Under the pieces are notes generated by a model. It was given only the letters and a program-made list of their open reading frames with translations. It did no database searches and had not been told where the DNA came from. Both the position numbers and the translations under genes were made by a program. Positions 6,991 through 23,668 of a DNA stretch of 64,000 bases are shown piece by piece; the stretch's first letter is position 1, and each line of letters opens with the position of its first letter. The stretch is from the sequence record MT446416.1; one strand, given 5' to 3'.

Positions 6991-7149
6991 TTTGAATCTC
7001 CTAACTTTGTGGGCCGTCGCACCATTGCCGCCCTACGAGATACATTATTGCAGTACTGCTATACTTTGTCAATAGTTTTTTATTAATAGTTTTAGTACTG
7101 GCAGTACATCCACCAGCAGATAGTTACTCACCGTTATTAACTATATATT

Positions 7150-7240
7150 TTAGATACACCTATGCACCCGGTGGGCTAGTTTTTGTCTATGCGTATATAA
7201 TAGCAAAGGGACTTACCGGAGTCAATCCCTTTTTTATTCT
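7150..7240 (-). ncRNA. Small-RNA-like unit, family 1 (RCCC-AYN-GGGUGC), copy 1
   Basis: TTGACT(7220-25)-17-TATTAT(7197-7202), then GCCCACCGGGTGCATAGGTGTATCTA; no RBS or ORF. Confidence 0.5.
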
Positions 7241-7242
7241 TT

Positions 7243-7500
7243 TTATGAAATATCTTCGATGTAGTCGGCCCATTTCATTTTTTCAGTACTGTCAATGGCT
7301 ACCGGATTATTTGGATCAAACCATTCACCATTACCGCAATACATACCCACGGCTACGGTTTTATAGCCATCCTGTGCCGTATTCCATGACATTGCACGAT
7401 AGATATGGCCTTTAATTGGTGTTAGTACTGGTAACGTTTTATGGTCTTCTACGTAGGCCATAGCTTGAGGATTTACCCGATATTGTGTGAACTGTTCCAT
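7243..7500 (-). CDS. Hypothetical early protein
   Basis: ORF with its own promoter. Confidence 0.75.
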   Translation of the reverse strand: MEQFTQYRVNPQAMAYVEDHKTLPVLTPIKGHIYRAMSWNTAQDGYKTVAVGMYCGNGEWFDPNNPVAIDSTEKMKWADYIEDIS

Positions 7501-7576
7501 TATGTTTCCCCTTGTAGTTAGTAAAGTTATTACATCAGTACTATCAAGCTATGTCAATAGTACTGAAATAAAACTT

Positions 7577-7801
7577 TTAGATTAGATTATTGATACCTTC
7601 GATGGTAGACTCGCTTTCTTCTTTCTCCCATTGTCGGTAGTACTTCCATGTTTCATGATATGTGGCGATTAGTTCATCTTTTTGATCCTGGTTACATGCC
7701 AGTACTGAATCACGGTGAGCGGTGTTATAGATAGAATCGAATGATTTCTTCTCTTCTGCCAGGTTAGCTACTTCCCGCATCAGTTCATCAAAGTTAGCCA
7801 T
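7577..7801 (-). CDS. Hypothetical acidic early protein
   Basis: ORF with an AGGAG RBS. Confidence 0.75.
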   Translation of the reverse strand: MANFDELMREVANLAEEKKSFDSIYNTAHRDSVLACNQDQKDELIATYHETWKYYRQWEKEESESTIEGINNLI

Positions 7802-7868
7802 TTTAATACTCCTTTTAGTGGGGGAGGATATCTCCCCCTATGCAAAACATTATACGCTTTATTCAGTA

Positions 7869-8132
7869 CTATGCAAGTACTTTTTTCATATAAACATTAA
7901 ATTCTACACCGCCGTAACCTTCCACGATGATATGTTTTGCGTTATCACGCTTGCACATAGTGAAACCGTTGTTGATATGTTCTGCATTTTCCAGGGCTAC
8001 ATCACCGATAGCGGCACATACAGCACTAATAACAGTATTCCGCAAAGTACTGGTATCATTAGCGGTCATAGTAGTTTGCAGTACTACGTTGTCATATACG
8101 TGTGCATTGATAGTGATTTCAATAGCGTTCAT
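7869..8132 (-). CDS. Hypothetical early protein
   Basis: Start corrected to MNAIEIT (AGGAG RBS). Confidence 0.75.
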   Translation of the reverse strand: MNAIEITINAHVYDNVVLQTTMTANDTSTLRNTVISAVCAAIGDVALENAEHINNGFTMCKRDNAKHIIVEGYGGVEFNVYMKKVLA

Positions 8133-8253
8133 GGTGTATCTCCTGGACTTGAGGGGAAACCATTTCCCCCTCTCGATGTAAAACATTATACGCGAATTGC
8201 GATAGTATGCAAGTACTTTTTTAAAATAGTTTTCAGTACTGAATACTTATATA

Positions 8254-8340
8254 ATAGATACATTTATGCACCCGGTGGGTTAGATTGTTTTCATGCATAT
8301 ATAATAGCAAAGGGACTGACCTGAGTCAATCCATTTTTTT
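8254..8340 (-). ncRNA. Small-RNA-like unit, family 1, copy 2
   Basis: TTGACT...TATTAT promoter, then ACCCACCGGGTGCATAAATGTATCTA; no ORF. Confidence 0.5.
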
Positions 8341-8348
8341 AATCTTTT

Positions 8349-8933
8349 TTATCGTGTTATAGTTACGGCTTTTACATCACGCTTTTTATAGTACTGATTC
8401 CAGATATTGCGGGTTAAACCGTAATCAAGTACTTTAATCAAGCCGTTACGATCCTGGCCGATATTCTGTTTTCTGATATCTCTTATAGTTAGTGTTGATA
8501 AGGTATCATCAACGTGTTGTAGTGCATCAGCAAAGCGGTGCTGGCGTTCAATGGTATTACGTTTAATATTGCACTTTAATTCGTTGCACGCGTTAACGTG
8601 CTTTACGCTGCCTTTGCTTGCAGTACTCAAACGATCCATAACAATAAACATATTATCAGGATCGCTTAAATGCATATGCACCTTAGCAAAGTACTGTTTC
8701 ATTTGAGGGCGGTCATAATCTAAAAAATTCCATACCTTACATTCAGTTTCATTTTGTTCTACACCCGCATCACAATTCGCGACCTTGATCACTAACCGAT
8801 CATTTAAAGCGAATACTATACGGGAAGAACCCGCACCGATGATCTCAAGACCAGCTAACCGACAAGCTGAAAGGATCTCTTTGTTGGTTTCCATTTCTGA
8901 CAGTGTACGGATAAATTTAGTATAATTACGCAT
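8349..8933 (-). CDS. Protein kinase-like (ePK/APH fold) protein
   Basis: IGAGSSRIV glycine loop, VIK lysine, NETE helix-C Glu, DIRKQN catalytic loop and LDYG; start MRNYTK. Confidence 0.75.
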   Translation of the reverse strand: MRNYTKFIRTLSEMETNKEILSACRLAGLEIIGAGSSRIVFALNDRLVIKVANCDAGVEQNETECKVWNFLDYDRPQMKQYFAKVHMHLSDPDNMFIVMDRLSTASKGSVKHVNACNELKCNIKRNTIERQHRFADALQHVDDTLSTLTIRDIRKQNIGQDRNGLIKVLDYGLTRNIWNQYYKKRDVKAVTITR

Positions 8934-8980
8934 TGCATTTACTCCTTGAATTGATGAAACTATATTACAGTACTTTACTA

Positions 8981-9208
8981 TCAATGGCAACTACTTTTTT
9001 TAACATTAACGGCGTGGATCACTTCCTTAGTGTTTTTAGTACTGAATACTTTTGCCGCTCCTTGTTCGACCGTGATGCGATAGCGACCATTAACATCAAC
9101 CATATTAATAAAGTCCGGCGTGCTGAATGGTGTTGTTTTACATTTCAGTACGGTTAACAGTTCCACCAGCGATGTAGTTTATTTGATACGTTTTTCTAAA
9201 GTAATCAT
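8981..9208 (-). pseudogene. Early gene interrupted by an in-frame TAA at codon 10
   Basis: ATG at 9208 with a GGGG RBS reads MITLEKRIK*TTSLVELL..., TAA at 9179-9181, in frame with track ORF 8981..9166. Confidence 0.55.
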
Positions 9209-9262
9209 TTTGTTTTCCCCCGTGTTGGTATATATACATAGTACTAAAACATTTGAGTACTG

Positions 9263-9517
9263 TCAACGTGAAATTCTTTTAATAGCAGTATTATACTGCT
9301 GGTGCTCATACAAACTAATTTTACCAGTACTCTCGATAACGATTCTATTGTTAGTGTCTACATCGATAACACGCAGTTTACCGTTGCTTAACTTCCTAGG
9401 TAATATGTTACCATTAATAAACTCATTAGCAAGCTGTACGGCCTTTGTGATGATTCTCTGAGGGGCTTTATAGTGTACCCGCAAGATATTATCTTTAGAT
9501 AGTTGTACCTTAATCAT
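9263..9517 (-). CDS. Hypothetical early protein
   Basis: ORF with RBS. Confidence 0.7.
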   Translation of the reverse strand: MIKVQLSKDNILRVHYKAPQRIITKAVQLANEFINGNILPRKLSNGKLRVIDVDTNNRIVIESTGKISLYEHQQYNTAIKRISR

Positions 9518-9579
9518 TTTAGTTTATCCTATAAAAAAAGCGGGAACTGATCCCGCCGTGTTGTTAGTACTGCTAGGTA

Positions 9580-9984
9580 TTAGATAACCTGTCGGCGTTT
9601 ACTGAATACAGTAACACTGTTTCCCTTGCGGTCGTGGCGGATCTCTCGTTGGTTGCGAATCAGTACACTTGGACGCTTCAAGTTAGCCAGATGATCCGCG
9701 TGAGTCCATGCATTCGAATTTACGGAAACTTTAATATCAGAACCCGCGACGAATTCATCTTGAGCGTTAAGAATTGCCGCCAGTTCTTCAGCTTGTTTTT
9801 GTTCTGCTGCTGTCAGTACTGGCTCAGGTGAATTCACAATATCAGAGATTTCTTTGAACTGTACGGCCCAGCGTTGGCCTTTCGGTGCATCTTTGCCCAT
9901 GTCTTTAAATAGCTCACCTTCCTCGCGTGCAACAATACGGGCAGCTTCACGGGTAGCGTAGAATTTAGTAATCATGGTATACAT
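9580..9984 (-). CDS. Hypothetical early protein, paralog of 21493..21756
   Basis: Shared TRE.AR..AR, FKDMG, RWAV and HDRKGN.VTV. Confidence 0.8.
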   Translation of the reverse strand: MYTMITKFYATREAARIVAREEGELFKDMGKDAPKGQRWAVQFKEISDIVNSPEPVLTAAEQKQAEELAAILNAQDEFVAGSDIKVSVNSNAWTHADHLANLKRPSVLIRNQREIRHDRKGNSVTVFSKRRQVI

Positions 9985-10070
9985 CCTATTAGTTAAGTTA
10001 GTACTACAAGCGAGAGTCTATTATAAAGTACTATCTGTGTAATGTCAAATAGTACTTTAAATGGATTCTA

Positions 10071-10394
10071 TTACATGTCTTTCTTACGTTTTACATCGTA
10101 GTAGCGAACTGTTATTTCTTTGTTAATCTCTTTTTCGATGCGGTGAATAACTTTTTCTTTCGGGTTGAAACCTATAACGGTTTCTTTAATGATCTCCAAA
10201 CCAGTGTATTCGCCTTGCGTACCGTAACCGTATGTAAAGGTTTCGTGTCCCAGGTCTTCCCAGCGGTCGCCAATTAACGCAGACACGTAGCAAGAGTGGT
10301 AAGTATTGCCGTTCCGATCAGTCCAGCGATTAACTTTAATGTCAAAGGAGGTTACAATTTTCAGTTCTACTTTCTGGGTAAGGATCATAGCCAT
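10071..10394 (-). CDS. Hypothetical early protein, paralog of 16639..16983
   Basis: Shared RW...GNTY.S, F.YGYG and DVKRKKD. Confidence 0.8.
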   Translation of the reverse strand: MAMILTQKVELKIVTSFDIKVNRWTDRNGNTYHSCYVSALIGDRWEDLGHETFTYGYGTQGEYTGLEIIKETVIGFNPKEKVIHRIEKEINKEITVRYYDVKRKKDM

Positions 10395-10481
10395 TTTTAT
10401 TTCTCTCTTTTAGTTAGGAGGGGAACCATTCCCCTCACTTGATGTAATCTATTATACAGTACTAAGATACTTTGTCAATAC

Positions 10482-10757
10482 TTAAGTATTGTAAATGTCG
10501 TGAATAGTGATAAAGTTTTTACGACCGTAAACCTGTAAATCGGTATCAATGTAGTGTTTATCTAGTACATCCTCGACGCTTAACGCGGTGTCGTGGATAT
10601 CTTCGTAGAATTGAGGATCTACAATCTTGCTTAAGTCATCCGGTGTTAACTTATCGTTAAGCCATTGCACCGCCTGGATATCTGCTTCACGTTTCCAGTC
10701 TTGCAGGTTAGTAGTCAGTACTTGCTCGATTTCGTTAGCTGTCAGTAGAATCCGCAT
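10482..10757 (-). CDS. Hypothetical acidic early protein
   Basis: ORF with an AAGGA RBS and its own promoter. Confidence 0.75.
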   Translation of the reverse strand: MRILLTANEIEQVLTTNLQDWKREADIQAVQWLNDKLTPDDLSKIVDPQFYEDIHDTALSVEDVLDKHYIDTDLQVYGRKNFITIHDIYNT

Positions 10758-10825
10758 TTTAATGTTTCCTTATCAGTGGTTGATGTAAGTATTATACTCG
10801 TTTACTTTCTATTGTCAATCTTTTT

Positions 10826-10901
10826 ATCAGGGGAGTTTTTCGTATGTCTTACTCCTGGACTACTTAACGGGGTTACTTGTTTCGTTCCCCCGTCCTGATG
10901 T
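10826..10901 (-). ncRNA. Structured RNA, family 2 (14-nt-loop hairpin), copy 1
   Basis: Promoter-driven, no ORF; GGAGT-AAGACATACGAAAA-ACTCC hairpin at 10832-10855; near-identical to 20819-20895. Confidence 0.55.
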
Positions 10902-10975
10902 AAAACATTATACTTGATTTTAAGTACAATGCAAGTACTTTTTAAAAATAGTTTTCAGTACTAGCCACCAGCAAA

Positions 10976-11062
10976 TAATAGATACATTTATGCACCCTGT
11001 GGGCTGATTTGTTTCTATGCGTATATAATAGCAAAGGGACTTACCGGAGTCAATCCCTTTTT
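10976..11062 (-). ncRNA. Small-RNA-like unit, family 1, copy 3
   Basis: Promoter, then GCCCACAGGGTGCATAAATGTATCTA; Chi site just downstream (10965). Confidence 0.5.
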
Positions 11063-11071
11063 TAATTATTT

Positions 11072-11221
11072 TTAAACTTGTTTTGGGTTGCGATATGTGA
11101 TAGCGTTCGGGTACATTTGTTTAATGTTATTCCATGCCTGGTTAACATTATAACCACTTGAGCGAATCAGTTGGTTACTACCGACACCTTGAAACACTAC
11201 TTCGAATAAGAATTCTTTCAT
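11072..11221 (-). CDS. Small hypothetical protein (49 aa)
   Basis: Hand translation MKEFLFEVVFQG...; ATGA-coupled to the upstream gene. Confidence 0.65.
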   Translation of the reverse strand: MKEFLFEVVFQGVGSNQLIRSSGYNVNQAWNNIKQMYPNAITYRNPKQV

Positions 11222-11391
11222 GCTTTCACCTCGCGATCTGCTTTACCTTTACGCCACGCTGTTGCTAATTGTTCGCGTTGCCATAAGTCGAGTGATACGT
11301 AAAGTTTTGCATTATCACCCTTCGGATATTCGCCAGTAGTACCAATCCGATAAAACAGATCTTTCAGTACTGTCAATTCTACCTGGATCAT
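11218..11391 (-). CDS. Small hypothetical early protein
   Basis: Start corrected to MIQVELT. Confidence 0.7.
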   Translation of the reverse strand: MIQVELTVLKDLFYRIGTTGEYPKGDNAKLYVSLDLWQREQLATAWRKGKADREVKA

Positions 11392-11477
11392 TATACTTTC
11401 CTCTTTGTTAGGAGGGGAACTATTCCCCTCTCGATATAAAACATTATACACTTTATTCAGTACTGTGCAAGTACTTT

Positions 11478-11690
11478 TTAATCTTTCAGCCAATGATCCT
11501 GAATGAATTTTTCACCAAATCCCTGTTTCATGGATTCTAACAGGCGTTCACGGTGAGCGTTGGCGAATTGCTCCGTACTATGCGTTACACCTGGTTGATA
11601 TCTGGATTCACCATTGGGGGCGATGTATTGCACATCCCACGGTTTAGCGTTAGTATCAGACCATTTACGAACGATTAGTTGACCTTGCAT
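11478..11690 (-). CDS. Hypothetical early protein
   Basis: ORF with its own promoter module. Confidence 0.75.
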   Translation of the reverse strand: MQGQLIVRKWSDTNAKPWDVQYIAPNGESRYQPGVTHSTEQFANAHRERLLESMKQGFGEKFIQDHWLKD

Positions 11691-11776
11691 TTTTCTTTCC
11701 TCTTAGTGGGGAGAATCATTTCTCCCCTTCATGTAAACTATTATACAGTACTATAATCTATTGTCCAGTACTTTTT

Positions 11777-11965
11777 TTACAGTTTATGAATCAATTCTTT
11801 ATCTAAGCGATAGCGTACATTATTAATAGTAACGGCATTGTTTTTAATGCTACGCTGTACTGGTCCACCAGCAATAACAAACGTTGCCTTATTACCCCGA
11901 ACAATGATAGCACTTCCTGGATTGCTGTATTCATCTTGTACTAAAATACTTGATAAGTTTTCCAT
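11777..11965 (-). CDS. Hypothetical early protein
   Basis: ORF with its own promoter module. Confidence 0.75.
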   Translation of the reverse strand: MENLSSILVQDEYSNPGSAIIVRGNKATFVIAGGPVQRSIKNNAVTINNVRYRLDKELIHKL

Positions 11966-12052
11966 TTTTATTTCCTCTTAGTAGGGGAAGATGTTTCCCC
12001 TTGATGTAATACAGTATACACTATCTTTCAGTACTGTCAATACTTTTTAGTA

Positions 12053-12409
12053 TTACGATAAAATCATGATAGGATATTCACTATCGATCAGTACTTCGAA
12101 TCCAAAACCTTCGTACCATTCTTTAAGATTAAAGGCGTTATCTTCTCCCGTATCGCATTCTAAAATGATACAATCGGAATCATCAGCGGCATCAATAAAG
12201 GCATTCATTAATTCGTTACCTTCACCATTGCCCCGACTATCAGGATCAACATAAAGAGAATCAATAAACGCTACACGGTCATAATCAAGATCCGGTGCAA
12301 TGATTCCACGTTTTTCAAACCAGTACTGCAATTGTGCTACTTTGCCCTGTACTTGATAGCCAGTGATCTCGCCATTGTCAGTAGTACGCGTGATATGTTG
12401 TATTCCCAT
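12053..12409 (-). CDS. GNAT-family acetyltransferase
   Basis: Motif A: IDSLYVDPDSRGNGEGNELM; C-terminal WYEGFGF. Confidence 0.85.
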   Translation of the reverse strand: MGIQHITRTTDNGEITGYQVQGKVAQLQYWFEKRGIIAPDLDYDRVAFIDSLYVDPDSRGNGEGNELMNAFIDAADDSDCIILECDTGEDNAFNLKEWYEGFGFEVLIDSEYPIMILS

Positions 12410-12472
12410 GATTTCTATCCTCAGTTAAGATATAAAATATTATACACTATCTTTCAGTACTGTCAATACTTT

Positions 12473-12730
12473 TTATCTCATAGATCTATGCCAACAATTA
12501 CGCGGGGGACGTTTAAAAGTACTATCATGATCCTCCTGGCAAGTTATGCAGTACATGCACCCTACAACGGCCTGGCGTCGATTCTCAGGGATTAAATCAC
12601 CGCAATCATGACAATGTGTTAGTGATTCTCTTTGTGCGTTAATTTGCTTTCTAGCGTGGTTTACGGCGGCCTGAATCACTGCGTTAATCTCGTCTTGTTC
12701 GGCCCCGTCTTTCGCGAATCCTACTGCCAT
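12473..12730 (-). CDS. ybiI: DksA/TraR C4 zinc-finger protein (YbiI-like)
   Basis: MAVGFAKD..., ESLTHCHDCGDLIPENRRQA...CMYCITCQE; closely follows the YbiI/TraR pattern. Confidence 0.85.
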   Translation of the reverse strand: MAVGFAKDGAEQDEINAVIQAAVNHARKQINAQRESLTHCHDCGDLIPENRRQAVVGCMYCITCQEDHDSTFKRPPRNCWHRSMR

Positions 12731-13065
12731 TATTTTAACCTCATTATAAAAATACTATATTACTGTAATGCTACAATAATACTACTAGTACTAATCTTAT
12801 TCAAACCACATGATACTACATATCCACCAGCATTACCACGGATAGTAACGCCTTTGTACTGTCTATATAAATTCAACTGCGTTTATTGCCTTTGATCAAG
12901 AATTGATCAGAATTATACGCCTTATGCTAAATTGATCCAGTACTTTTTGATCATTTATTGATCAATATTATACAGTTACATTTGTGCACCCTATGGGTTG
13001 GTGACGTTCTCGTCTTGATGTAAGTATTATGCCAGTACTGGATGATATTGTCAATAGATTATTTT
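12731..13065 (-). other. Non-coding AT-rich stretch with a family-1 unit, five TTGATC sites and a Chi site
   Basis: GATC at 12894, 12905, 12934, 12949 and 12960; ACCCATAGGGTGCAC motif at ~12985-12999 behind TTGACA-17-CATAAT; CCACCAGC at 12824. Confidence 0.6.
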
Positions 13066-13256
13066 AACTTTTTTCTGTCATTGATTAATGCTTTCAGTAC
13101 TATACTAATGATTTGCAATGATTCATCAATGACTATAAAATTATTATCTTTCATTAGATGATAGTTACCATTGATATTATATTCTAATGAGTACTGTTTA
13201 CGTTTAATTTTTGATAATGTTTCTATTTGTTTTTGTACTGATTTCATGCTAATCAT
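13059..13256 (-). CDS. Hypothetical protein
   Basis: ORF track. Confidence 0.6.
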   Translation of the reverse strand: MISMKSVQKQIETLSKIKRKQYSLEYNINGNYHLMKDNNFIVIDESLQIISIVLKALINDRKKLK

Positions 13257-13361
13257 TGTTAAACGTCCTGTAACGCATTCTAACGATATAAACGGTTTAG
13301 TACTGGCATTGTATAGGGTAAATGATTAAAGCCCACCAGCGTTAACTAGTGGGCTATAATC

Positions 13362-13505
13362 TTACATCTTGCGGATAATCTTAACAGTATCTTTCACCGA
13401 TTTACCGTCTTGCTGGCATTGCTCGATCATCGCGTATTGTTCTGCGGTCAGATCCTCGCCAGTTTTTGCCAGTACTGCATCGATGAATGAATCCAGTGCG
13501 ATCAT
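13362..13505 (-). CDS. Small hypothetical protein (47 aa)
   Basis: Hand translation MIALDSFIDAVLAKTGE...; own promoter; GCCCAC hairpin terminator at ~13331-13354. Confidence 0.65.
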   Translation of the reverse strand: MIALDSFIDAVLAKTGEDLTAEQYAMIEQCQQDGKSVKDTVKIIRKM

Positions 13506-13595
13506 TTTATTTCTCTCTTAGGTTAAGTTAACTACTGTTTATAAAACTTATTATACAGTACTATCAATCTATGTCAATAGTACTGGTAATATATT

Positions 13596-13847
13596 TTATA
13601 CGGGCTGTACCGCCAGTGTATTATCTGTTATAACCTGGTACATAACTTTTACAGTACTGTATGCTTCTTTGATGCTTAGCCCTTGAACTACAGGGACTTC
13701 ATCAGCACCACCAGGAAGGGTACGCGAGATAACCAGTTTATCATTTTCTGAATGTACACAGTAACGATAGGTCATCTGGCGACGGGCTAACGCATCATTC
13801 AAGTACTGTAAGTGGCGTTCTACGTTCTCGCGAGTAATACGGGTCAT
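13596..13847 (-). CDS. Hypothetical early protein
   Basis: Start corrected to MTRITRE (AAGGA RBS). Confidence 0.75.
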   Translation of the reverse strand: MTRITRENVERHLQYLNDALARRQMTYRYCVHSENDKLVISRTLPGGADEVPVVQGLSIKEAYSTVKVMYQVITDNTLAVQPV

Positions 13848-13930
13848 GATTGTTTCCTTAATAGTGTGGACTTGATAAAACTTATTATACAGTACTATCA
13901 ATCTTTGTCAATAGTACTGTGATAATATTT

Positions 13931-14143: not shown

Positions 14144-14237
14144 TTTGTTTTCTCTTTGTTAGTGGGGAGAATCATTTCTCCCCTTGATGTAACTTATTAT
14201 ACAGTACTATAATCTATTGTCAAACTATTTTTTAATA

Positions 14238-16237: not shown

Positions 16238-16288
16238 GGTATAATCCTCAATATAAGCGGCCTAAATCGACCGCTAACGATGTTTTGA

Positions 16289-16558: not shown

Positions 16559-16638
16559 TTTACTATCCTCTTAATTTGATTTAATTTCTTTCCCCTATGC
16601 AGACACTATATCAAAGTATCTGCATAAAGTAAAGCTAA

Positions 16639-16983
16639 TTAAAGATCTTTTTTGCGTTTAACATCAGTTACCGAACTGTAAACAGTGATATTATTGTCAC
16701 GGCAAAAACGGGAAAGATAAGAACCGCGTAAAAACTCTTTACCTTCCATATTAATAACCTTGCTAAATTCTTCCATTGCTACAGTGTCAAAGTGATCCCC
16801 ATAGCCATATTGGAACGGCACGTTTACTACTTCAATAAATTCGCCATTGATTTCAACATCTACCGTTAAAGAGAAATAAGTATTACCATAAGACGCCTGG
16901 AACCAACGCCGGGCTGCAATATGTACAACTTCAACAGAAGACAGGTTGATGTTTTGTGCTGTGATAGTGTTGATGATAGCCAT
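16639..16983 (-). CDS. Hypothetical early protein, paralog of 10071..10394
   Basis: GNTYFS, FQYGYG, DVKRKKDL. Confidence 0.8.
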   Translation of the reverse strand: MAIINTITAQNINLSSVEVVHIAARRWFQASYGNTYFSLTVDVEINGEFIEVVNVPFQYGYGDHFDTVAMEEFSKVINMEGKEFLRGSYLSRFCRDNNITVYSSVTDVKRKKDL

Positions 16984-17065
16984 TTTTTGTTTCCTCTTAG
17001 TGGGGGAACCATTCCCCTTGATGTAATGTATTATACTTTATCTGATTTACTTTGCAAGTACTTTT

Positions 17066-17293
17066 TTAATTTAATTCATCCAGGCAAAGGATACGTTCTA
17101 CACCTAAATCAGTTAAACTAATAGACGGCACTTGATAGGTTTCAATGTATGCTACACTTGCCCACTGACCGAACTCATTAACGGCCCAGGTATCCATTGC
17201 AAAATGCAATTCCGCACCTGCCTTGTTGGTAATGACTGCAACTACTTGTTCGTTGCCAGTAGTACCAGATACGCGAGTAATGATAATAGCCAT
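17066..17293 (-). CDS. Hypothetical early protein
   Basis: Start corrected to MAIIITR. Confidence 0.75.
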   Translation of the reverse strand: MAIIITRVSGTTGNEQVVAVITNKAGAELHFAMDTWAVNEFGQWASVAYIETYQVPSISLTDLGVERILCLDELN

Positions 17294-17539
17294 TGTTTTG
17301 ATTCCTTTTATTTGGAGGGGAAACTGTTTCCCCCCCTCTCGATGTAAAACATTATACGCTAATCTCTTTATAGTGCAAGTACTTTTTATTACTTTTTGCA
17401 AAATACTTTAAACGCTCTCAATCGCTCTATAACAACATTAACGCCACCAGCTAGGGAAATGCATCAGATATTCAGTTTAATGCGTTAGAATCGTTTCTAG
17501 GCGGTGCTGGTGGCCTGGTAAACGGTAAACACAAAAAAT

Positions 17540-17566
17540 CCCACTGTTTAAGGTGGGCTAGTGATT
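17540..17566 (-). terminator. Hairpin terminator; identical 27-bp copy at 18831-18857
   Basis: CCCACTGTTTAAGGTGGGCTAGTGATT, with a U-tract on the - strand. Confidence 0.75.
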
Positions 17567-17580
17567 CAGTACTTTAATTG

Positions 17581-18063
17581 TTATGCTTCAACTTTGCGAT
17601 GAGCTTCGATCCATTCCTCGCGAGTCAATCCGCTTTCTTTGATAGCATCCAGTACTACCGAAATGCAGTTACCACGCACCGGAATCAGATATTCTTCCCC
17701 GTTATCAAGTACTACCGCTACACGTTCTTGAATCCATTTTTTAGGCTTAGACTCCGGCTTATCTTCCCCATACTTAACCGCCAGGGCTTTTTGTGCCATC
17801 TCGGTAACTACTTCCATATCCAGCCCATCTACTACCGCCTGGATACTTTCAATTGTTGCTTGTAGTTCTGCTTCACGGGCCGCCTTCGCTGCTTCAATCT
17901 CTGCCGCTTTATTTGCTTGTAGTTCTTTCGCAGTACTGTAAGCGATGTTAAAATTATTGCGAACCGCTTTCATGGTATCGTTATCCAGTTCAGCCAGGAT
18001 CTCTGCCGCTACGTTAGTTTCATTTGCTACCAGTGCTTTGATGAATGATTTGATGTTAGCCAT
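17581..18063 (-). CDS. Divergent H-NS/StpA-like protein
   Basis: By-eye alignment to E. coli H-NS: NIKSFIKA vs NIRTLRA; VVDGLD...LAVKYG vs IADGID...LAAVKSG; VLDNGE...RGNCISVVLDAIKESGLTREEW vs VDENGE...[22 protein letters not shown]. Confidence 0.6.
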   Translation of the reverse strand: MANIKSFIKALVANETNVAAEILAELDNDTMKAVRNNFNIAYSTAKELQANKAAEIEAAKAAREAELQATIESIQAVVDGLDMEVVTEMAQKALAVKYGEDKPESKPKKWIQERVAVVLDNGEEYLIPVRGNCISVVLDAIKESGLTREEWIEAHRKVEA

Positions 18064-18127
18064 TAGATAAATCCTCAATTAAAGTTTAGTTTACGTTCAT
18101 TAGTGTATCAAAGTTTAATCGACGTGT

Positions 18128-18181
18128 CCAGTTTTTCGTTCGACTTACTGGCGGTCTACTTAGTGTTCCCCGTCTTGATGT
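18128..18181 (-). promoter_or_regulatory. Family-2 14-nt-loop hairpin in the 5' leader of the H-NS-like gene
   Basis: CCAGT-AAGTCGAACGAAAA-ACTGG at 18128-18151; promoter TTGACA(18209-14)...TAGAAT(18187-92). Confidence 0.6.
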
Positions 18182-18214
18182 AATACATTCTACGCCTTTT
18201 TGCGGTAATGTCAA

Positions 18215-18775
18215 CTATCTTTTTGAATATTTTTTAATGTATCTCATAATCGCTGGCGGTGTAGTATTATACCTTTCAGCTAGTATAATTGAGTTAGCAT
18301 CATGTGAATATGGTTTATACAGTTGTATAACTTCGTTAATCTCTTTTTCAGTTAGTTTTGTCCTAACATGCCTTATACCTTCACTCTCATACTTCACTAT
18401 TTTTTTAATAGGCGTTGCGTCGTCATGTATTCCGGTATCGTGTGCGTGTATTATGTTTTCCTTTCCGGTTGACCATTCCAAATTACTGTAATGATTATTA
18501 CTTTTATTTCTATCCTTATGATTAACCTGGACTTTCTTTCTTTTTGTTTTTTGTGCCCATTCTATTTGTGCAGGTGTCGGAGGGGGTAGATAGTTGGATG
18601 CAACCAATCTTTGAACATACTCAAAATGTTTTGATTTGTCTTCTCTTACAAGCGTTAATCTATGATACCCATCAGGGCGAATTGTTGGAGAAAGAATATT
18701 ACTACCATAACGCCTAACATCCCCATACTCACTAATTTCATAAAGGGGATTCTCTTTTAATTGTTTCCATTCCAT
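18215..18775 (-). mobile_element. NUMOD4/HNH homing endonuclease-like gene
   Basis: W..L...P.YEISEYG N-terminus; VQRLVA..; VNHKDRNKSNNHYSNLEW HNH motif. Confidence 0.85.
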
Positions 18776-18856
18776 TGATTTGATCCTTTTAGTTTCTCCT
18801 TTGTATTATATCACACAAAAACAAAAAAAGCCCACTGTTTAAGGTGGGCTAGTGAT

Positions 18857-19156
18857 TTATAAACAGTTAATTACTCCTGTGTGCGTTACTTTCTCAGTAT
18901 CCATTACAGTGACCGAACCGCGTTTAGTACTGGCATCATAATAAATTGTTGTGCTACCTTTCGCATCTTCTTCATGGAACGGGCCGTTTTTAAATGCTTC
19001 TGGCTGGATCTCTAGATCCTTTAAAACAATATCGCCAGTTCTTTCTTCGGTCATTGCAACAGTGCACTGAATGAATTTTTCACTACTTACATCTAACGAC
19101 GCATTAACAGCGAAAGAGGAAACAGATAAAGCCAGGGAGATGATTGCTACTTTCAT
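18857..19156 (-). CDS. Secreted/periplasmic protein
   Basis: MKVAIISLALSVSSFAVNA signal peptide; two Cys; start corrected. Confidence 0.75.
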   Translation of the reverse strand: MKVAIISLALSVSSFAVNASLDVSSEKFIQCTVAMTEERTGDIVLKDLEIQPEAFKNGPFHEEDAKGSTTIYYDASTKRGSVTVMDTEKVTHTGVINCL

Positions 19157-19264
19157 TTGATTATCCTTAGTTACCAGGGGAACCGTTCCCCCTATGTAAA
19201 ACATTATACGCGTTTAAAAACTATTATCAAGTACTTTAATATAAAAGTATTTGAAAAATAATTG

Positions 19265-19392
19265 TTGACAACTGCATCCAGTACTGGCATAATACCTACA
19301 TAAAGACAAAACAGTCTCCAACCCACCGGGTGCATAGATCCGTCTATTAAATGATTCAGTACTGCAAAATAAAGGGGATCAATTGATCCCCT
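19265..19392 (+). ncRNA. Small-RNA-like unit, family 1, + strand
   Basis: TTGACA(19265)-17-CATAAT, motif ACCCACCGGGTGCATAG at 19321, then the GGGGATC-AATT-GATCCCC hairpin at 19374-19391. Confidence 0.55.
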
Positions 19393-19397
19393 CTGTA

Positions 19398-19619
19398 TTA
19401 CTTAGTAAGGTATAAACAGAAGTCACCTTTATTTGCTACGCCGCCAGTGTAACGCGATGAATAGTTAGAAATATCTTGTACTTCTGCTATTACCAGTGTA
19501 TCATCATTCATTTCGTCGCAGAAGCAAACGGCTGGATCTTTTACGCCGATATTGTCGGCATGTTCCCGCATAGATTTAACCAGTGCTTCCAGTTGAGAAA
19601 GAGTAGTGATATTAGCCAT
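19398..19619 (-). CDS. Hypothetical early protein
   Basis: Start corrected to MANITTL. Confidence 0.75.
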   Translation of the reverse strand: MANITTLSQLEALVKSMREHADNIGVKDPAVCFCDEMNDDTLVIAEVQDISNYSSRYTGGVANKGDFCLYLTK

Positions 19620-19809
19620 TGTATTTTCCTCATTACCAGGGAGAACCATTTCTCCCCTCTATGTAAACTATTATACAGTACTGGAAACTAATTGCAAGTA
19701 CTTAATGGTAAGATCCGCAACGGTTGCAGTAGTTTTATTTGTTCGATCATGATGCTTACTCCTGGTTAAAGGCGGGAACCATTCCCCGCCATTGTCACAG
19801 TACTGAATA

Positions 19810-20049
19810 TTACATTCCAACCATTGCAGCACGGATCGCAGTAGTGCTATACTTGAATCCGTCCGGCGTTGTAGTAGTACCGTTGGCTTTTAATCTGCGG
19901 TACATACATTCCGCTGCAATATCTTTCGTTTTACTTTGAGCGATGCAATTTTGAGCAATCCGGTACAATGATTCATCGTTATTGATCCAAAGGCTTACAT
20001 TCCAATGAGTTTTGTTTTTGTGTCCGTTGTAAGTTTTAGTACTAGCCAT
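19810..20049 (-). CDS. Hypothetical early protein, paralog of 21838..22065
   Basis: NGHKN..HWNVSLWINNDESLY shared. Confidence 0.8.
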   Translation of the reverse strand: MASTKTYNGHKNKTHWNVSLWINNDESLYRIAQNCIAQSKTKDIAAECMYRRLKANGTTTTPDGFKYSTTAIRAAMVGM

Positions 20050-20138
20050 TTTTTAATCCTCTTATATAGTGGGGAACTATTCCCCACCTGATGTAAAGTA
20101 TTATACGCTTTTAAACTTAGTTTGCAAGTACTTTTTAA

Positions 20139-20750
20139 TTAATATGCGATTGATTCTACTACGCCATCAATAACATTGAATTGATATTCGTTACCCTCAA
20201 TCAGTGCCGTAATGTTTTCAGTAGTGAATTGATCCTTATATGCATTCTCTAAATCACGGTAAAACTTGCGTGACAATTCACGAATAGTATCAGTTAGTAG
20301 TTTCTCAAGCTCATTAACTAACGTTTCTTGTTTTGAGGTTAAATCAGTGTAAGCCGATTCAATGTACCCGCTTACAGTGTTCTCATGCGAGTAATGGGAG
20401 TGAGATCGCTTTACACTCATCGCCAAATCATCTTCATTCAGCAGGTGACGGATTGAGCGATACTTAGTTAATGCTCTTACCTTGCGTAAAAACTTCACTG
20501 CGTCAACGTGGTCAGTACTGATTGATGCACCGTCACCCTGGGACCAAAAACCACTGAATTGTATTTCAGCGTCATTAATGCCATATTCTGGTAGTACTGT
20601 TTCTTTATAGTATTCAATTTCACTTTCAGAAAAATAATCGTCGTTTGTGTTTTTTTCACGTTCCCGAACCAGTTCGATAGCTGACGTTTTTTGTTCTGCG
20701 TTCAATTCAGAAAAATCCATAACATAAGTAGTAGTAGTGATAGTTTTCAT
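20139..20750 (-). CDS. Conserved acidic phage/ICE-type hypothetical protein
   Basis: FSELNAE..A and FSGFWSQGDGA motifs; function unvalidated. Confidence 0.75.
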   Translation of the reverse strand: MKTITTTTYVMDFSELNAEQKTSAIELVREREKNTNDDYFSESEIEYYKETVLPEYGINDAEIQFSGFWSQGDGASISTDHVDAVKFLRKVRALTKYRSIRHLLNEDDLAMSVKRSHSHYSHENTVSGYIESAYTDLTSKQETLVNELEKLLTDTIRELSRKFYRDLENAYKDQFTTENITALIEGNEYQFNVIDGVVESIAY

Positions 20751-20818
20751 TTTGTAACCCTCATTCAGTAGTTGATGTAAGTATTATACGCTTTTAAAAA
20801 CAATTGTCAAACTATTTT

Positions 20819-20895
20819 ATCAGGGGAGTTTTTCGTATGCCTTACTCCTGGGCTACTCAACGGGGAGTTACTTATTTCGTTCCCCGTCCTGATGT
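20819..20895 (-). ncRNA. Structured RNA, family 2, second standalone copy
   Basis: GGAGT-AAGGCATACGAAAA-ACTCC at 20825-20848, an ACGGGGA/TCCCCGT stem and an ATCAGG/CCTGAT closing stem; no ORF. Confidence 0.55.
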
Positions 20896-20971
20896 AATAC
20901 ATTATACGCCGTTAAACATAGTATGCAAGTACTTTTTAAAATAGTTTTCAGTACTGAATAGTAAAAAGGTA

Positions 20972-21145
20972 TTGACAGCACTATCCAGTACTGGCATAAT
21001 ATACCCCATGACAACAGCTAACCCACCGGGTGCACAATTGTAACTGTACTAAACTACTTTTTCTATAGATACACTCCCGCACCCCGTGGGCCAAATTGTT
21101 CGTTTCAATAGATACATTATGCCAGTACTGACAAAATAAGTCAAT
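20972..21145. ncRNA. Convergent pair of family-1 units
   Basis: + strand: TTGACA(20972)-17-CATAAT, motif at 21021. - strand: TTGACT(~21139-44)-17-CATAAT, motif GCCCACGGGGTGCGGGAGTGTATCTA at ~21066-21091. Confidence 0.5.
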
Positions 21146-21174
21146 ACTGGCAATTGTAAAGATTTGTAAACTAC

Positions 21175-21405
21175 TTATACTGCAATCGCGTCCAGGCTAT
21201 AATAATAATAAGTGCCGTATTGGTGTACTTTATTACCTTTTATTTCAGTACTGAATGAATCCGAACGATTAGCATATGATGTTAATTTAAAGTACTTTGC
21301 TTTACTAATACGTTGCCATACACCGCAGATCCGCTGTAAGTAAGTAGTTTTATTAGTGGTAGTATCTTTTACGGTTTTAACTTCGGTCATATACATATTA
21401 GCCAT
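21175..21405 (-). CDS. Hypothetical early protein
   Basis: Start corrected to MANMYMT. Confidence 0.75.
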   Translation of the reverse strand: MANMYMTEVKTVKDTTTNKTTYLQRICGVWQRISKAKYFKLTSYANRSDSFSTEIKGNKVHQYGTYYYYSLDAIAV

Positions 21406-21492
21406 TTTTTTAATCCTCTTATGTAGTGGGGAAGTATTCCCCATCTGATATAAAGTATTATACGCTTTTAAACTTAGTATGCAAGTACTTTT

Positions 21493-21756
21493 TTATAGTA
21501 CTGCAATCTTTTTAGTACGGTACACGGTAACGCGATTGCCCTTGCGGTCGTGCTTTATTTCTACTACTCGCCGCGATACACTATCAGGACTTTTTAACGC
21601 CGCCAACCAGTACTGTAAAGATCTGGCTTTACTTTGCTTTACTACCGCCCAACGTTTACCACGTTCCGATTGTCCGCCCATATCTTTAAACGTCGCCCCG
21701 TCCAGACGTGCGGCGATCCGTGCTTGTTCACGCGTCACAAAGTACATAATATTCAT
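21493..21756 (-). CDS. Hypothetical early protein, paralog of 9580..9984
   Basis: Shared motifs as noted for 9580..9984. Confidence 0.8.
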   Translation of the reverse strand: MNIMYFVTREQARIAARLDGATFKDMGGQSERGKRWAVVKQSKARSLQYWLAALKSPDSVSRRVVEIKHDRKGNRVTVYRTKKIAVL

Positions 21757-21837
21757 GCTGTTACCCCATCGTTGACGTATAAAAGAAATCTATTATAAAG
21801 TACTATCACCGTGCAATAGTACTTTAAATATATTCTA

Positions 21838-22065
21838 TTACATTCCAACCATCGCCGCACGCACGCTTGATTTGCTATAACGTGCCCCATCAGGCGTGTG
21901 AGTACCTAAAAGGCGTAACATCCGCTCAACCGCTTTATCTCGCGTGTTGGTGCTTTTAATACTTTCCAGGGCCAATTGGTACAGTGATTCATCGTTATTG
22001 ATCCAAAGGCTTACATTCCAATGGTTGTAGTTTTTATGGCCGTTGAAAGTTTTAGTAGTAGTCAT
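21838..22065 (-). CDS. Hypothetical early protein, paralog of 19810..20049
   Basis: WNVSLWINNDESLY. Confidence 0.8.
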   Translation of the reverse strand: MTTTKTFNGHKNYNHWNVSLWINNDESLYQLALESIKSTNTRDKAVERMLRLLGTHTPDGARYSKSSVRAAMVGM

Positions 22066-22158
22066 TTTTAATTCCTCTTAAGTGCAGCGGGAACCATTCC
22101 CGCTCTCGATGTAATACATTATACGCTATTTGATAGTACTGTCAAACTAATTTTTAAC

Positions 22159-22521
22159 TTATTCGTAAATTTTGCCACTGTCAGCCCATACCAGGAAACG
22201 AGGCATATTATCCCATGCATCTTGTTTTAAATTTAAACCGTGTAATACTTCTGTACTTTCCATTCCTGGTACTGGTTTACTATACACCGCGAACATTTCA
22301 CCCATATACTGATAAGCCATCGTTAAATCACTGGCGATCATCTTATGGATCATCGCATCAAGCATCACGGTAGCGGCGTATTGTTCACGCTTAAGCGGCA
22401 ACATTGCAATAAGTCCACGATAAGCTGAAATGTGAATTTTTACCGTTTCTGCCGGAAGATCTTTCATCTCGTCGCGGAAGTTAACCAGGTTAGCAATAAT
22501 TTTATTGATTTGTGTCGCCAT
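22159..22521 (-). CDS. Hypothetical protein, first gene of the early block
   Basis: ORF with promoter module at 22546-22610. Confidence 0.8.
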   Translation of the reverse strand: MATQINKIIANLVNFRDEMKDLPAETVKIHISAYRGLIAMLPLKREQYAATVMLDAMIHKMIASDLTMAYQYMGEMFAVYSKPVPGMESTEVLHGLNLKQDAWDNMPRFLVWADSGKIYE

Positions 22522-22660
22522 CGTTTTTAATCTCTCTTAAAGTGCAGCGGGAACCATTCCCGCTCTCGATGTAATACATTATACGCCGTTAAACATAGTA
22601 TGCAAGTACTTTCTACAAATACTTTTAAAATAGTTTTCTTTCTATATAGGGGAACTATCT

Positions 22661-22712
22661 TTCAGTACTATCTTTCAGTACTATCATTCAGTACTATCAT
22701 TCAGTACTGAAT
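22661..22712. repeat. 13-bp tandem repeat x4 (TTCAGTACTATCW)
   Basis: Units start at 22661, 22674, 22687 and 22700. Confidence 0.9.
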
Positions 22713-22871
22713 CAATCCACTAAATCATCCCTATACCCCGTAAAACGGCCTCAGACGCATTCTAACGCATTAATACACCTAAGCTATACATTTGCACCAT
22801 TCCAATCATTCCAGGGCTTTACGGGCCGTTGAAACGCGTTAAATTATTTTCAATTATTTTGTTTTTAGGTA

Positions 22872-23170
22872 TTGACTTGATCCTGAAAAAGCGTATAATT
22901 ACTACATAAGCCGGACACAAGGCACTAACCCACAGGGTGCGGAATTACGCCCAAAATTCAAGATATAAAAAAAGGATACACTCCCGCACCCTAGCAGGTC
23001 AACGCACTTTCTCAGTACTGAAATATAGTACCATAGTACTTGCCAGGATAGCAAGCAAATTAATTAAAACTTTTTTGCTTCCAGGGTATTGCTTTATTTT
23101 TTCAGTACTGTATAATAGTTTCATCAAGTCGAGAAAGACTCAAGCCCACCGGGTGCATAGTTACGCCCAA
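22872..23170 (+). ncRNA. Two + strand family-1 units and one degenerate - strand copy
   Basis: Motifs at 22928 (ACCCACAGGGTGC) and 23144 (GCCCACCGGGTGCA), each behind a TATAAT promoter; degenerate copy at ~22976-22999. Confidence 0.5.
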
Positions 23171-23338
23171 AATTCAGTACTGAAAAAATTTTTAAAATAT
23201 CTGTCCAGGCCGTTGACATTGCCCCCAGTTTATAAGATAATGATTCCAGATTCAGAAAAATCTAACTCCAGATACTGCGGGGAAACTATCCCCACGCGGT
23301 AGGGGAACTATTGGAAAAAACAAAATAAAATTTTGATT

Positions 23339-23490
23339 TAGCCGTCTATACTTCCAGACGTGTAACCATCTAGCCGTTTAGCCGTCCAAACGTCTAGCCA
23401 TCCAGCCATCCAGAAATCTAGCCGTTTAGCCGTCTAGATGGATAGCCATCTTTACTTCCATACTTCTGGAGGTCTAGACATATCTACGTC
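23339..23490. repeat. Degenerate 8-bp tandem array, consensus YAGCCRTC, about 19 units
   Basis: Eight YAGCCRTY copies in exact 8-bp phase: 23339, 23371, 23379, 23395, 23403, 23419, 23427, 23443. Confidence 0.85.
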
Positions 23491-23648
23491 CAAAATCCAC
23501 CCAGGGTTACTACACCCAAAATCCGTCAGTACTATACCATAGATCTATCTTTTGAAAGGGAGTATTCAGTACTGCCATCATAGCCCTCACTATGTTACCC
23601 TAGGAGGATGAAGACTATCATGTAGTACTGAATACTGTTAGAGGGAAT

Positions 23649-23668
23649 CCACCAGCTTGTGCTGGTGG
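23649..23668. other. Inverted pair of Chi sites
   Basis: CCACCAGC-TTGT-GCTGGTGG. Confidence 0.85.

Follow-up and report, generated by a model that had tools for sequence, protein, structure and literature searches.

The ten exact copies of the E. coli Chi sequence that cluster in the giant phage TH47 lie within the roughly 18.5-kb stretch inferred to be its direct terminal repeat (DTR), that is, the DNA that such a phage carries at both ends of its virion genome. The sites are oriented so that the host nuclease RecBCD, entering from either inferred end, would soon meet a correctly oriented Chi, and related giant phages of enteric bacteria share this layout. This suggests, from sequence alone, that the phage uses RecBCD to save and join its DNA ends.

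A cluster of Chi sites in the inferred terminal repeat

We analyzed a 64,000-nucleotide stretch (here, the window) of sequence record MT446416.1, which is Escherichia virus TH47, a 352,450-bp Asteriusvirus jumbo phage. An earlier note, made from the sequence alone, had listed ten Chi sites in an early block and one elsewhere, and this observation is borne out at every position. Exact GCTGGTGG occurs on the minus strand at 7110, 9163, 10965, 11865, 12824, 13333, 17444 and 23649, on the plus strand at 17506 and 23661, and once more at 47655 (minus). These 11 sites compare with 0.56 expected from dinucleotide shuffles, in which the largest count was 3 and none of 100 shuffles reached 11.

To relate the cluster to the physical ends of the phage, we aligned the window with relatives whose ends have been mapped. 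Position 1 of fEgEco12 aligns to window 24245, while fEgEco12 position 20993 and position 1 of the G17 record, which independently agree, both align to window 5737. In fEgEco12 the two 20,993-bp copies are identical, and the DTR was confirmed by PhageTerm and restriction digests; G17 showed about 20 kb of terminal redundancy by coverage. The inferred TH47 DTR thus spans 5737-24245 (18,509 bp), although its termini are transferred by homology and the TH47 record holds a single collapsed copy of the repeat. In virion orientation, which is the reverse complement of the window, the left terminus is window 24245 and the right terminus is window 5737. The same DNA is the early region transcribed by host RNA polymerase, with 10 perfect TTGACA-16/17-TATAAT promoters on the minus strand.

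All ten clustered sites lie inside this interval, where Markov models of order 0 to 3 expect 0.2 to 0.4, in agreement with the earlier note's estimate of about 0.2. The whole genome contains 23 Chi, 10 of them in this 5.25% of its length (binomial P = 1e-7), a density 13.9 times that of the rest of the genome. The 13 sites elsewhere roughly match a third-order Markov expectation (13 against 8.9) and all lie in ORFs, mostly long ones, 8 of them in frame as Ala-Gly-Gly. Within the DTR the signal is specific to the exact octamer: its 24 one-mismatch neighbors together occur 5 times, and Chi ranks 8th of about 10,800 octamers, behind only AGTACT-family and promoter words.

One possibility is that the cluster is a by-product of composition or coding, or chance, helped by duplication of repeat units. 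The DTR is slightly richer in G+C (38.7% against 34.9%), its sense strand is G rich, and Chi outside the repeat is a by-product of Ala-Gly-Gly codons. However, the Markov models built on the repeat itself expect at most 0.4 sites, most sites are intergenic, their flanks are unrelated (so the sites are not copies of one unit), and the pattern recurs in independent lineages. We regard this explanation as very unlikely.

Placement and context of the individual sites

Seven of the ten sites (7110, 10965, 13333, 17444, 17506, 23649 and 23661) are intergenic by homology to the annotated genes of fEgEco12, as the earlier note had claimed, although about 68% of the DTR is coding. The note's claim of two inverted pairs is half right, as only 23649/23661 is a true palindrome, CCACCAGC-N4-GCTGGTGG, which folds as an 8-bp hairpin, whereas 17444/17506 are simply two opposed Chi 62 bp apart with unrelated flanks. 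Its claim that three sites lie just downstream of family-1 units is loosely true: ten such units exist (core AGCCCACNGGGTGCA), and Chi follows three of them at 19, 46 and about 150 nt, but the spacing varies, so Chi is not part of that repeat.

Minus-strand sites of the window are on the virion top strand, active against entry at the right end. The first Chi that RecBCD entering the right terminus would meet is at 7110-7117, 1,373 bp in, 46 nt downstream of a family-1 core. The next, at 9163-9170, lies in the truncated remnant of the g43 homologue, which has a TH47-specific TAA stop just upstream, and is coding in the relatives. The site at 10965-10972 falls 19 nt after a family-1 core and about 35 nt before the next promoter, and the site at 11865-11872 lies inside the intact g32-homologue coding sequence (11777-11965). 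The site at 13333-13340 forms the 3' arm of an 11-bp terminator-like hairpin followed by TTT (-9.9 kcal/mol, z = -5.9), and G17 has a terminator annotated at the homologous place. These five sites, together with 17444-17451, a member of the opposed pair 6.7 to 6.8 kb from the left terminus, are conserved in all five aligned phages. In contrast, the site at 12824-12831, within the small, coding g29-homologue region, appears young or labile: it is present in TH47 and fEgEco12, 121Q has GCTGGGGA, and the region is absent in G17 and A4. The eighth top-strand site, at 23649-23656, is one arm of the terminal palindrome and, in the right DTR copy, the innermost Chi.

The two plus-strand sites are on the virion bottom strand, active against entry at the left terminus. 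The first, at 23661-23668, is the other arm of the palindrome, 578 bp in. The second, at 17506-17513, is 6.7 kb in and is found in TH47 and fEgEco12 only, with G17 and A4 differing by 1 base and 121Q by 3.

These contexts raise the question as to whether the octamer acts as Chi at all, or is instead a binding site or structural element of the phage's own (a terminase or packaging signal, an early-transcript terminator or stability hairpin, or a regulator site) that happens to equal Chi. One site is the arm of a terminator-like hairpin, two form a perfect hairpin, several sit between a terminator and the next promoter, and the repeat is full of other repeated regulatory words. Against this, an 8/8 match to the host's Chi recurs 8 to 14 times in five lineages whose flanks differ and share no common extended motif, one-mismatch variants are not enriched, sites occur in coding and noncoding DNA alike, and the octamer is absent from the DTR of a Pseudomonas relative (see below). 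No factor other than RecBCD is known to use this octamer. We consider this alternative unlikely.

Conservation and orientation among related phages

To determine whether the arrangement is shared, we examined four lineages with mapped or predicted DTRs. fEgEco12 has 12 Chi in its DTR and 0 in 6.7 kb of flanks, Muenster has 8 against 0 in the next 20 kb, fENko-Kae01 has 14 against 0, and CBB has 9 against 3. Chi ranks 1st to 17th among octamers in each DTR. As evidence of selection, among five Asteriusvirus-like phages the octamers diverge by 3.8% against 9.0% for their flanks (P = 0.0017). The terminal palindrome is retained in fENko-Kae01 (at 484-503) although its flanks and loop have diverged, and 121Q has gained a lineage-specific site; A4, however, lacks the palindrome.

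The records give E. coli as the host of TH47, and Klebsiella and Pectobacterium are the hosts of the relatives; enteric RecBCD enzymes recognize this Chi. The related Pseudomonas phage PA5oct has no GCTGGTGG in its 39-kb DTR, consistent with a link to the host. PA5oct also shows no compensating enrichment of the proposed Pseudomonas Chi (2 against 0.56 expected, only 1 in the DTR), so the strategy is not universal in the wider clade.

Across the four lineages, top-strand sites have a mean relative position of 0.62, towards the right terminus, and bottom-strand sites 0.26, towards the left (Mann-Whitney P = 0.0014). The first correctly oriented Chi lies 0.38 to 1.43 kb from the right end, and 0.48 to 0.58 kb from the left end in three phages; Muenster's first left-end Chi is 6.5 kb in. 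The arrangement in TH47 is lopsided (8:2), of which about 2:1 is expected from the G-richness of the sense strand.

The top-strand bias is 36:7 across lineages, which could instead mean that the sites serve replication, being co-oriented with forks that start near the left end and move rightward; if such a fork collapsed, RecBCD entering the broken arm would meet Chi and restart it, as on the E. coli chromosome. An iteron-like array and a large noncoding region near the left terminus could be an origin, and GC skew switches sign at about window 24000. Yet this does not explain why Chi stops exactly at the repeat boundary while the next 20 kb (in Muenster and fENko-Kae01) has none, nor why bottom-strand sites gather next to the left terminus, and the rest of the 334-kb genome shows no Chi selection. 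We think this reading improbable.

A proposed role at the genome ends

The earlier note had proposed self-mimicry that protects both ends of incoming linear DNA and/or drives recombination between terminal repeats, and our analysis supports that interpretation. The refutations it had named in advance that could be examined computationally all came out in its favor: Chi density is not uniform across the genome, shuffled controls give about 0.3, and the host is E. coli, whose Chi is this octamer. The early block also coincides with the repeat whose ends were mapped in close relatives, and the geometry is the one the proposal requires. Sequence alone does not separate protection from recombination, however, and self-mimicry is a contested label (Subramaniam & Smith).

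We propose, with a probability of roughly 0.6, that the Chi cluster is a cis-acting feature of the long DTR. In this view, the virion DNA is linear with the same early block at both ends, and RecBCD can load on either end of the injected DNA and degrade inward, meeting eight top-strand Chi from the right and two bottom-strand Chi from the left. On recognizing Chi it would stop destroying the 3'-ended strand, load RecA on it, and itself be disabled. The RecA-coated tail, homologous to the repeat at the other end, could invade that repeat, so that the genome is rescued and converted into a circular or concatemeric, replication-primed form before any phage protein exists, including the phage's own RecA-like recombinase. 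Correctly oriented Chi reportedly protects linear DNA in vivo in a RecA-dependent way and inactivates RecBCD (Dabert et al. 1992; Kuzminov et al. 1994; Taylor & Smith 1999). Our analysis shows the octamers and their exactness, their confinement to the repeat, their orientation and position relative to mapped ends, and their conservation and link to the host. That RecBCD acts on these ends, that Chi stimulates recombination or protects DNA here, that its recognition benefits the phage, and which benefit is selected (end survival, recombination, or both) are inferences. The ends could be capped by protein, as in T4, and because the repeat and the early region are the same DNA in every lineage, belonging to the ends cannot be separated from belonging to early transcription units. 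In addition, Zheng et al. found no phage that RecBCD inhibits, so the selective pressure may be weak.

A related possibility is that the molecular event is the same but the benefit selected is immune evasion. Limiting RecBCD degradation of the injected ends would starve Cas1-Cas2 of fragments and avoid triggering defenses that sense RecBCD activity or its products, so that fewer CRISPR spacers are taken from the first DNA to enter. Chi sits near both termini in the correct orientation, Chi is reported to limit spacer acquisition (Levy et al. 2015), a finding the earlier note had cited, and the phage, having its own recombinase, may not need host recombination. However, many E. coli strains have silent CRISPR systems, and this idea does not explain why the sites are confined to the repeated DNA rather than extending inward. 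It cannot be told apart from our main proposal by sequence alone, and we consider it doubtful.

Chi enrichment is already known in P1 and in lambdoid phages without recombination genes; TH47 differs in that it is virulent and has its own RecA-like gene. In P1 (and P7 and D6), Chi is dense where the terminally redundant ends fall, on both strands and oriented towards the ends, and has been proposed to drive RecBCD/RecA recombination of the repeats to circularize the genome (Subramaniam & Smith). P1, however, is temperate and packages by headful from a pac site, so its redundancy is variable and spread over 20 to 40 kb; it has 50 Chi genome-wide (1 per 1.9 kb), and its growth needs RecBCD and RecA. 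In TH47 the repeat is inferred to be exact, the clustered Chi are confined to it, the rest of the genome is not enriched, and no dependence on RecBCD is known.

Rec-less lambdoid phages such as LLS (Zheng et al. 2025; Bobay et al. 2013 as cited there) likewise carry exact Chi far above expectation, among their most frequent octamers, clustered near a genome end and matching the orientation of RecBCD entry, and Chi is proposed to aid growth of LLS. LLS has cos ends and a single polarity (20 of 23 sites face the right end), and it lacks recombination genes and a RecBCD inhibitor. TH47 has a two-way arrangement inside a repeat, with most sites intergenic, and encodes a RecA-like protein (PF00154, 54 bits), a gp32-like protein and a Dda/RecD-like helicase, which breaks the rule of no Rec genes and many Chi seen in lambdoid phages; Sharanji is annotated likewise. 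No known RecBCD inhibitor was recognized among ten repeat-encoded proteins, though most are of unknown function. At 1 Chi per 15 kb, the TH47 genome as a whole falls below the E. coli density of about 1 per 4.6 kb that marks such phages, and only the repeat (1 per 1.85 kb) exceeds it.

The 10.2-kb terminal repeat of T5 follows the same genome logic as the Asteriusvirus repeat, being a long exact repeat carrying the first genes expressed from host promoters (the first-step-transfer, pre-early region), but it has only 2 Chi, both on one strand (rank 497 among octamers, P = 0.03), and so shows no strong enrichment; by report, the genome-wide density of T5 is already near that of E. coli. On the E. 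coli chromosome, where the same octamer and enzyme are at work with an orientation bias relative to where double-strand ends arise, Chi are less dense than in the TH47 repeat (about 0.22 against 0.54 per kb), mostly in genes, linked to codon usage, and oriented with replication, whereas those of the TH47 repeat are mostly intergenic and oriented with respect to the inferred physical ends of the molecule.

A bolder and more tentative reading, which we think less likely than not, is that the Chi array would be an essential cis element of a start-up mechanism shared by long-repeat jumbo phages of enteric bacteria. The phage would deliberately let RecBCD resect its ends to Chi and load RecA, and the invasion of one terminal repeat by the other would be the event that first primes replication or concatemer formation of a genome of about 370 kb, while also disabling the RecBCD molecules that engage the ends. 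RecBCD would then be a required host factor for a virulent phage that carries its own recombinase, and Chi clusters could be used to predict terminal repeats and host range in unmapped jumbo genomes.

Exact Chi octamers in the inferred terminal repeat of TH47

To verify the Chi cluster described in the earlier note, we first searched the window for exact matches to the octamer. GCTGGTGG was found at exactly the eleven positions that the note had listed, and the observation therefore held. Ten of these lie between 7110 and 23668 (eight on the minus strand and two on the plus strand), and one lies at 47655. Dinucleotide shuffles of the window give an expectation of 0.56, and no shuffle gave more than 3. 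The signal belongs to the exact octamer, as it occurs 10 times in the block, while each one-mismatch neighbor occurs at most once and the two internal 7-mers occur 11 times each. Under a third-order Markov model it ranks 8th of about 10,800 octamers, and only words of an AGTACT family and sigma-70 promoter words rank higher. The AGTACT-containing words are extremely overrepresented across the window: the palindrome CAGTACTG occurs 36 times in the repeat described below and 167 times elsewhere in TH47. This motif often sits in promoter spacers just upstream of the -10 element, and also stands alone.

One possibility is that Chi is simply part of a longer repeat. However, the flanks of the ten sites are unrelated and share no longer motif, indicating that the sites are not copies of one repeat unit. 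A repeated unit, here called family-1, consists of a strong promoter (TTGACT or TTGACA, 17 nt, TATTAT or CATAAT), then about 25 nt, then the conserved core AGCCCACCGGGTGCA followed by ta..tgtatct. It has ten copies, all inside the terminal repeat and on both strands, at window positions 7163, 8267, 10991, 12985, 15243, and 21078 (minus strand) and 19320, 21020, 22927, and 23143 (plus strand). The exact core occurs 6 times in the repeat and nowhere else in the genome. Chi follows only three of these units, at variable spacing, and we therefore rejected this reading. The family-1 unit looks like a family of very short promoter-proximal transcripts or a regulator site. An Rfam search of positions 5000 to 25000 returned no match at an E value of ≤0.1, either for these units or under the Chi sites. 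We also found no fixed distance from Chi to promoters or terminators.

We next examined what this block represents. The window is 100% identical to Escherichia virus TH47 (MT446416, 352,450 bp), an Asteriusvirus jumbo phage related to 121Q, PBECO4, and G17. A close relative, fEgEco12, has a 20,993-bp direct terminal repeat established by PhageTerm and restriction digests. Similar repeats of about 20 kb are reported for vB_Ec-M-J, Sharanji, Muenster, and fENko-Kae01, and G17 showed about 20 kb of terminal redundancy by coverage, although three of the repeat maps in relatives rest on PhageTerm or coverage alone. Aligning the record ends to the window gave single-nucleotide boundaries: fEgEco12 position 1 corresponds to window position 24245, while fEgEco12 position 20993 and G17 position 1 both correspond to window position 5737. 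The two fEgEco12 copies are identical. The inferred TH47 repeat, whose ends thus rest on homology, is therefore window 5737 to 24245 (18,509 bp), and the deposited TH47 record carries one collapsed copy and starts at an arbitrary point.

The repeat holds about 45 small genes, all on the window's minus strand, and has ten perfect TTGACA-16/17-TATAAT promoters, so it is a host-polymerase early region. Transcriptome sequencing (RNA-seq) of the related phage PA5oct shows that its repeat genes are early. Immediately outside both repeat boundaries (window 1 to 5700 and 24500 to 26000) lie dense arrays of head-to-tail, often overlapping small open reading frames (ORFs) of 60 to 90 amino acids on the same strand, with no intergenic promoters and no Chi, so their architecture differs from that of the repeat. 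PHROGs and Pfam searches of the repeat genes for a known RecBCD inhibitor gave only families of unknown function, a weak kinase-like match, and an HNH endonuclease, which is uninformative as to whether an inhibitor is encoded there. An HNH/NUMOD4 homing endonuclease gene (186 amino acids; window 18215 to 18775, minus strand) sits inside the TH47 repeat where fEgEco12 has different small genes (g09 to g11), and is probably a mobile insertion.

To determine whether Chi is enriched in the repeat specifically, we counted it across the entire genome. TH47 has 23 Chi sites in all. The repeat, which makes up 5.25% of the genome, holds 10 against 0.2 to 0.4 expected under Markov models of order 1 to 3, and the remaining 334 kb holds 13 against 2.5 to 8.9 expected. 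The density in the repeat is 13.9 times that of the rest of the genome (binomial P = 1e-7). At 0.54 per kb, it is also about 2.5 times that of the E. coli chromosome (1 per 4.6 kb). The 13 outside sites all lie in ORFs, among them genes resembling an RNA ligase and a ClpP protease, a likely tail fiber gene, and DNA polymerase and helicase genes, and eight of them read in frame as Ala-Gly-Gly. Six sites on one strand at 222 to 245 kb of the TH47 record resembled a second cluster. All six lie in ORFs, five of them long replication gene ORFs, and they mostly read as in-frame Ala-Gly-Gly. This second cluster is a coding by-product and is not comparable. In the repeat, by contrast, 7 of 10 sites are intergenic although about 68% of the repeat is coding.

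Orientation of Chi relative to the inferred genome ends

To further investigate a potential role at the genome ends, we examined the orientation of each site. Top-strand 5'-GCTGGTGG-3' is active for RecBCD entering from the right end. In virion orientation (the reverse complement of the window), the eight top-strand sites, which face the right end, lie at positions 590, 6795, 10906, 11415, 12374, 13274, 15076, and 17129 of the repeat, and the two bottom-strand sites, which face the left end, lie at 578 and 6733. RecBCD entering the right terminus would meet its first active Chi after 1,373 bp, with seven more behind it, while RecBCD entering the left terminus would meet one after 578 bp and another at 6.7 kb. 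If about 30 to 40% of encounters are recognized, roughly 94 to 98% of right-end entries and 51 to 64% of left-end entries would be converted within the repeat.

The sites at 578 and 590 form a perfect palindrome, CCACCAGC-N4-GCTGGTGG. Its 4-nt loop (window 23657 to 23660) reads ACAA on the virion top strand in TH47, but TTGT in fEgEco12 and 121Q and TTAA in fENko-Kae01; the TH47 loop is the reverse complement of its relatives' loop, as if the hairpin had flipped. About 200 bp inward of the palindrome, in the 1.7-kb noncoding stretch next to the left terminus, lies an iteron-like array of about 12 copies of an 8-bp unit (TAGCCGTC-like, 64% matches; window 23339 to 23437), which is a candidate replication origin or packaging signal. 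A perfect consensus promoter about 370 bp from the left terminus (window 23853 to 23880, minus strand; virion 366 to 393) fires inward into about 1.3 kb with no annotated gene, and its transcript would run through the palindrome. Similar promoters occupy the same place in fENko-Kae01 and Muenster. The TH47 promoter may produce a conserved noncoding early transcript.

Chi in the repeats of related phages

We next asked whether other lineages with mapped or predicted terminal repeats share this arrangement. In the E. coli phage fEgEco12, the repeat holds 12 Chi sites (10 top strand and 2 bottom strand), with 0 in 6.7 kb of adjacent unique DNA. In Muenster, a Klebsiella phage of the genus Alcyoneusvirus with ~30% genome similarity to fEgEco12, there are 8 (7 and 1), with 0 in the adjacent 20 kb. 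In fENko-Kae01, which infects Klebsiella aerogenes, there are 14 (12 and 2), with 0 in 20 kb. In CBB, a Pectobacterium phage of the genus Mimasvirus, there are 9 (7 and 2), with 3 in 22.5 kb. Chi ranks 1st to 17th among about 11,000 octamers in each repeat. The AGTACT words top the octamer ranking in four of the five enteric relatives and rank second in fENko-Kae01, but do not appear among the top words of PA5oct; AGTACTGA occurs 97 times in the Muenster repeat.

Pooled across lineages, the polarity of the sites is 36:7, which exceeds the 64:36 expected from strand composition (P = 0.004). Top-strand sites lie toward the right terminus (mean relative position, 0.62) and bottom-strand sites lie toward the left (0.26; Mann-Whitney P = 0.0014). 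These statistics pool related genomes and some sites may be orthologous between genera, so the P values are approximate. This link between orientation and position is what an end-directed function predicts, and a purely compositional or transcriptional bias does not predict it.

Individual sites show both constraint and turnover. In an alignment of TH47, fEgEco12, G17, 121Q, and A4, six TH47 sites (7110, 9163, 10965, 11865, 13333, and 17444) are intact in all five phages. Octamer positions differ at 3.8%, compared to 9.0% for the 40-nt flanks (Fisher P = 0.0017, not corrected for phylogeny). fENko-Kae01 has the same terminal palindrome at 484 to 503, although its flanks and loop have diverged. 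On the other hand, 121Q gained a site where the others have unrelated bases, the 6.7-kb bottom-strand site is intact only in TH47 and fEgEco12, and A4 lacks the palindrome. At the site at 9163, the TH47 homolog of fEgEco12 g43 (window 8965 to 9220, minus strand) is cut short by a TAA stop 10 nt upstream of Chi, where the relatives read GAA and continue through Chi in frame.

Another possibility is that the octamer is an intrinsic signal of the phage family. Arguing against this, the Pseudomonas relative PA5oct has no GCTGGTGG in its 39-kb repeat or the next 11 kb. We also tested the prediction that PA5oct would instead carry the proposed Pseudomonas Chi in its repeat, but it shows no clear enrichment of that sequence (2 against 0.56 expected). 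The strategy is thus not universal, and only the absence of the E. coli octamer is informative here. T5 was considered as a parallel and rejected, since its 10.2-kb repeat has 2 Chi sites (rank 497) and is not specially enriched.

Putative role of the Chi array

Taken together, the best-supported reading is that the repeat carries cis-acting Chi sites that convert RecBCD, at either injected end, from a nuclease into a RecA loader. The 3' tail so formed would be homologous to the other repeat copy, so it could rescue the end and generate a circular, concatemeric, or replication-primed form before any phage protein is made. The earlier note's interpretation, that Chi protects both incoming ends and/or drives recombination between the terminal repeats, is supported on the sequence evidence. 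What the analysis shows directly is the octamers, their confinement, and their orientation and conservation, while the TH47 ends, the access of RecBCD to them, and any function of the sites are inferred from sequence and homology alone. Protection, recombination, and reduced CRISPR adaptation all follow from the same molecular event and cannot be separated by sequence. Because the repeat is also the early region in every lineage, end function and early-region function are confounded, although the sharp stop at the repeat boundary and the link between orientation and position favor the former.

This is the mechanism proposed for the terminal redundancy of P1 and for phage LLS. The authors of the fEgEco12 study expect circularization through the repeats but do not mention Chi or RecBCD, and in the literature that we searched we found no prior description of Chi in jumbo phage terminal repeats. 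Chi enrichment near phage ends is already known for temperate P1-like phages and for lambdoid phages without recombination genes. The present case differs in that the phages are virulent and giant, enrichment is restricted to an exact terminal repeat while the rest of the genome is neutral, the arrangement is two-way, and most sites are intergenic. In addition, the phage has its own RecA-like and gp32-like proteins and a Dda-like helicase, which breaks the rule that phages without a Rec module have high Chi content.

In practice, a Chi cluster together with perfect host promoters appears to mark the terminal repeat in Asteriusvirus-like genomes that were deposited with arbitrary starts, as TH47 was. 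For this group of phages, a conserved, oriented Chi array confined to the terminal repeat gives a concrete hypothesis, testable genetically in E. coli K-12, for how very large linear genomes survive the first minutes in the cell and turn into a replicating form. It would extend the link between phages and Chi from temperate phages lacking recombination genes to virulent jumbo phages that have their own recombinase, and would also challenge the simple rule that phages either inhibit RecBCD or carry Chi.
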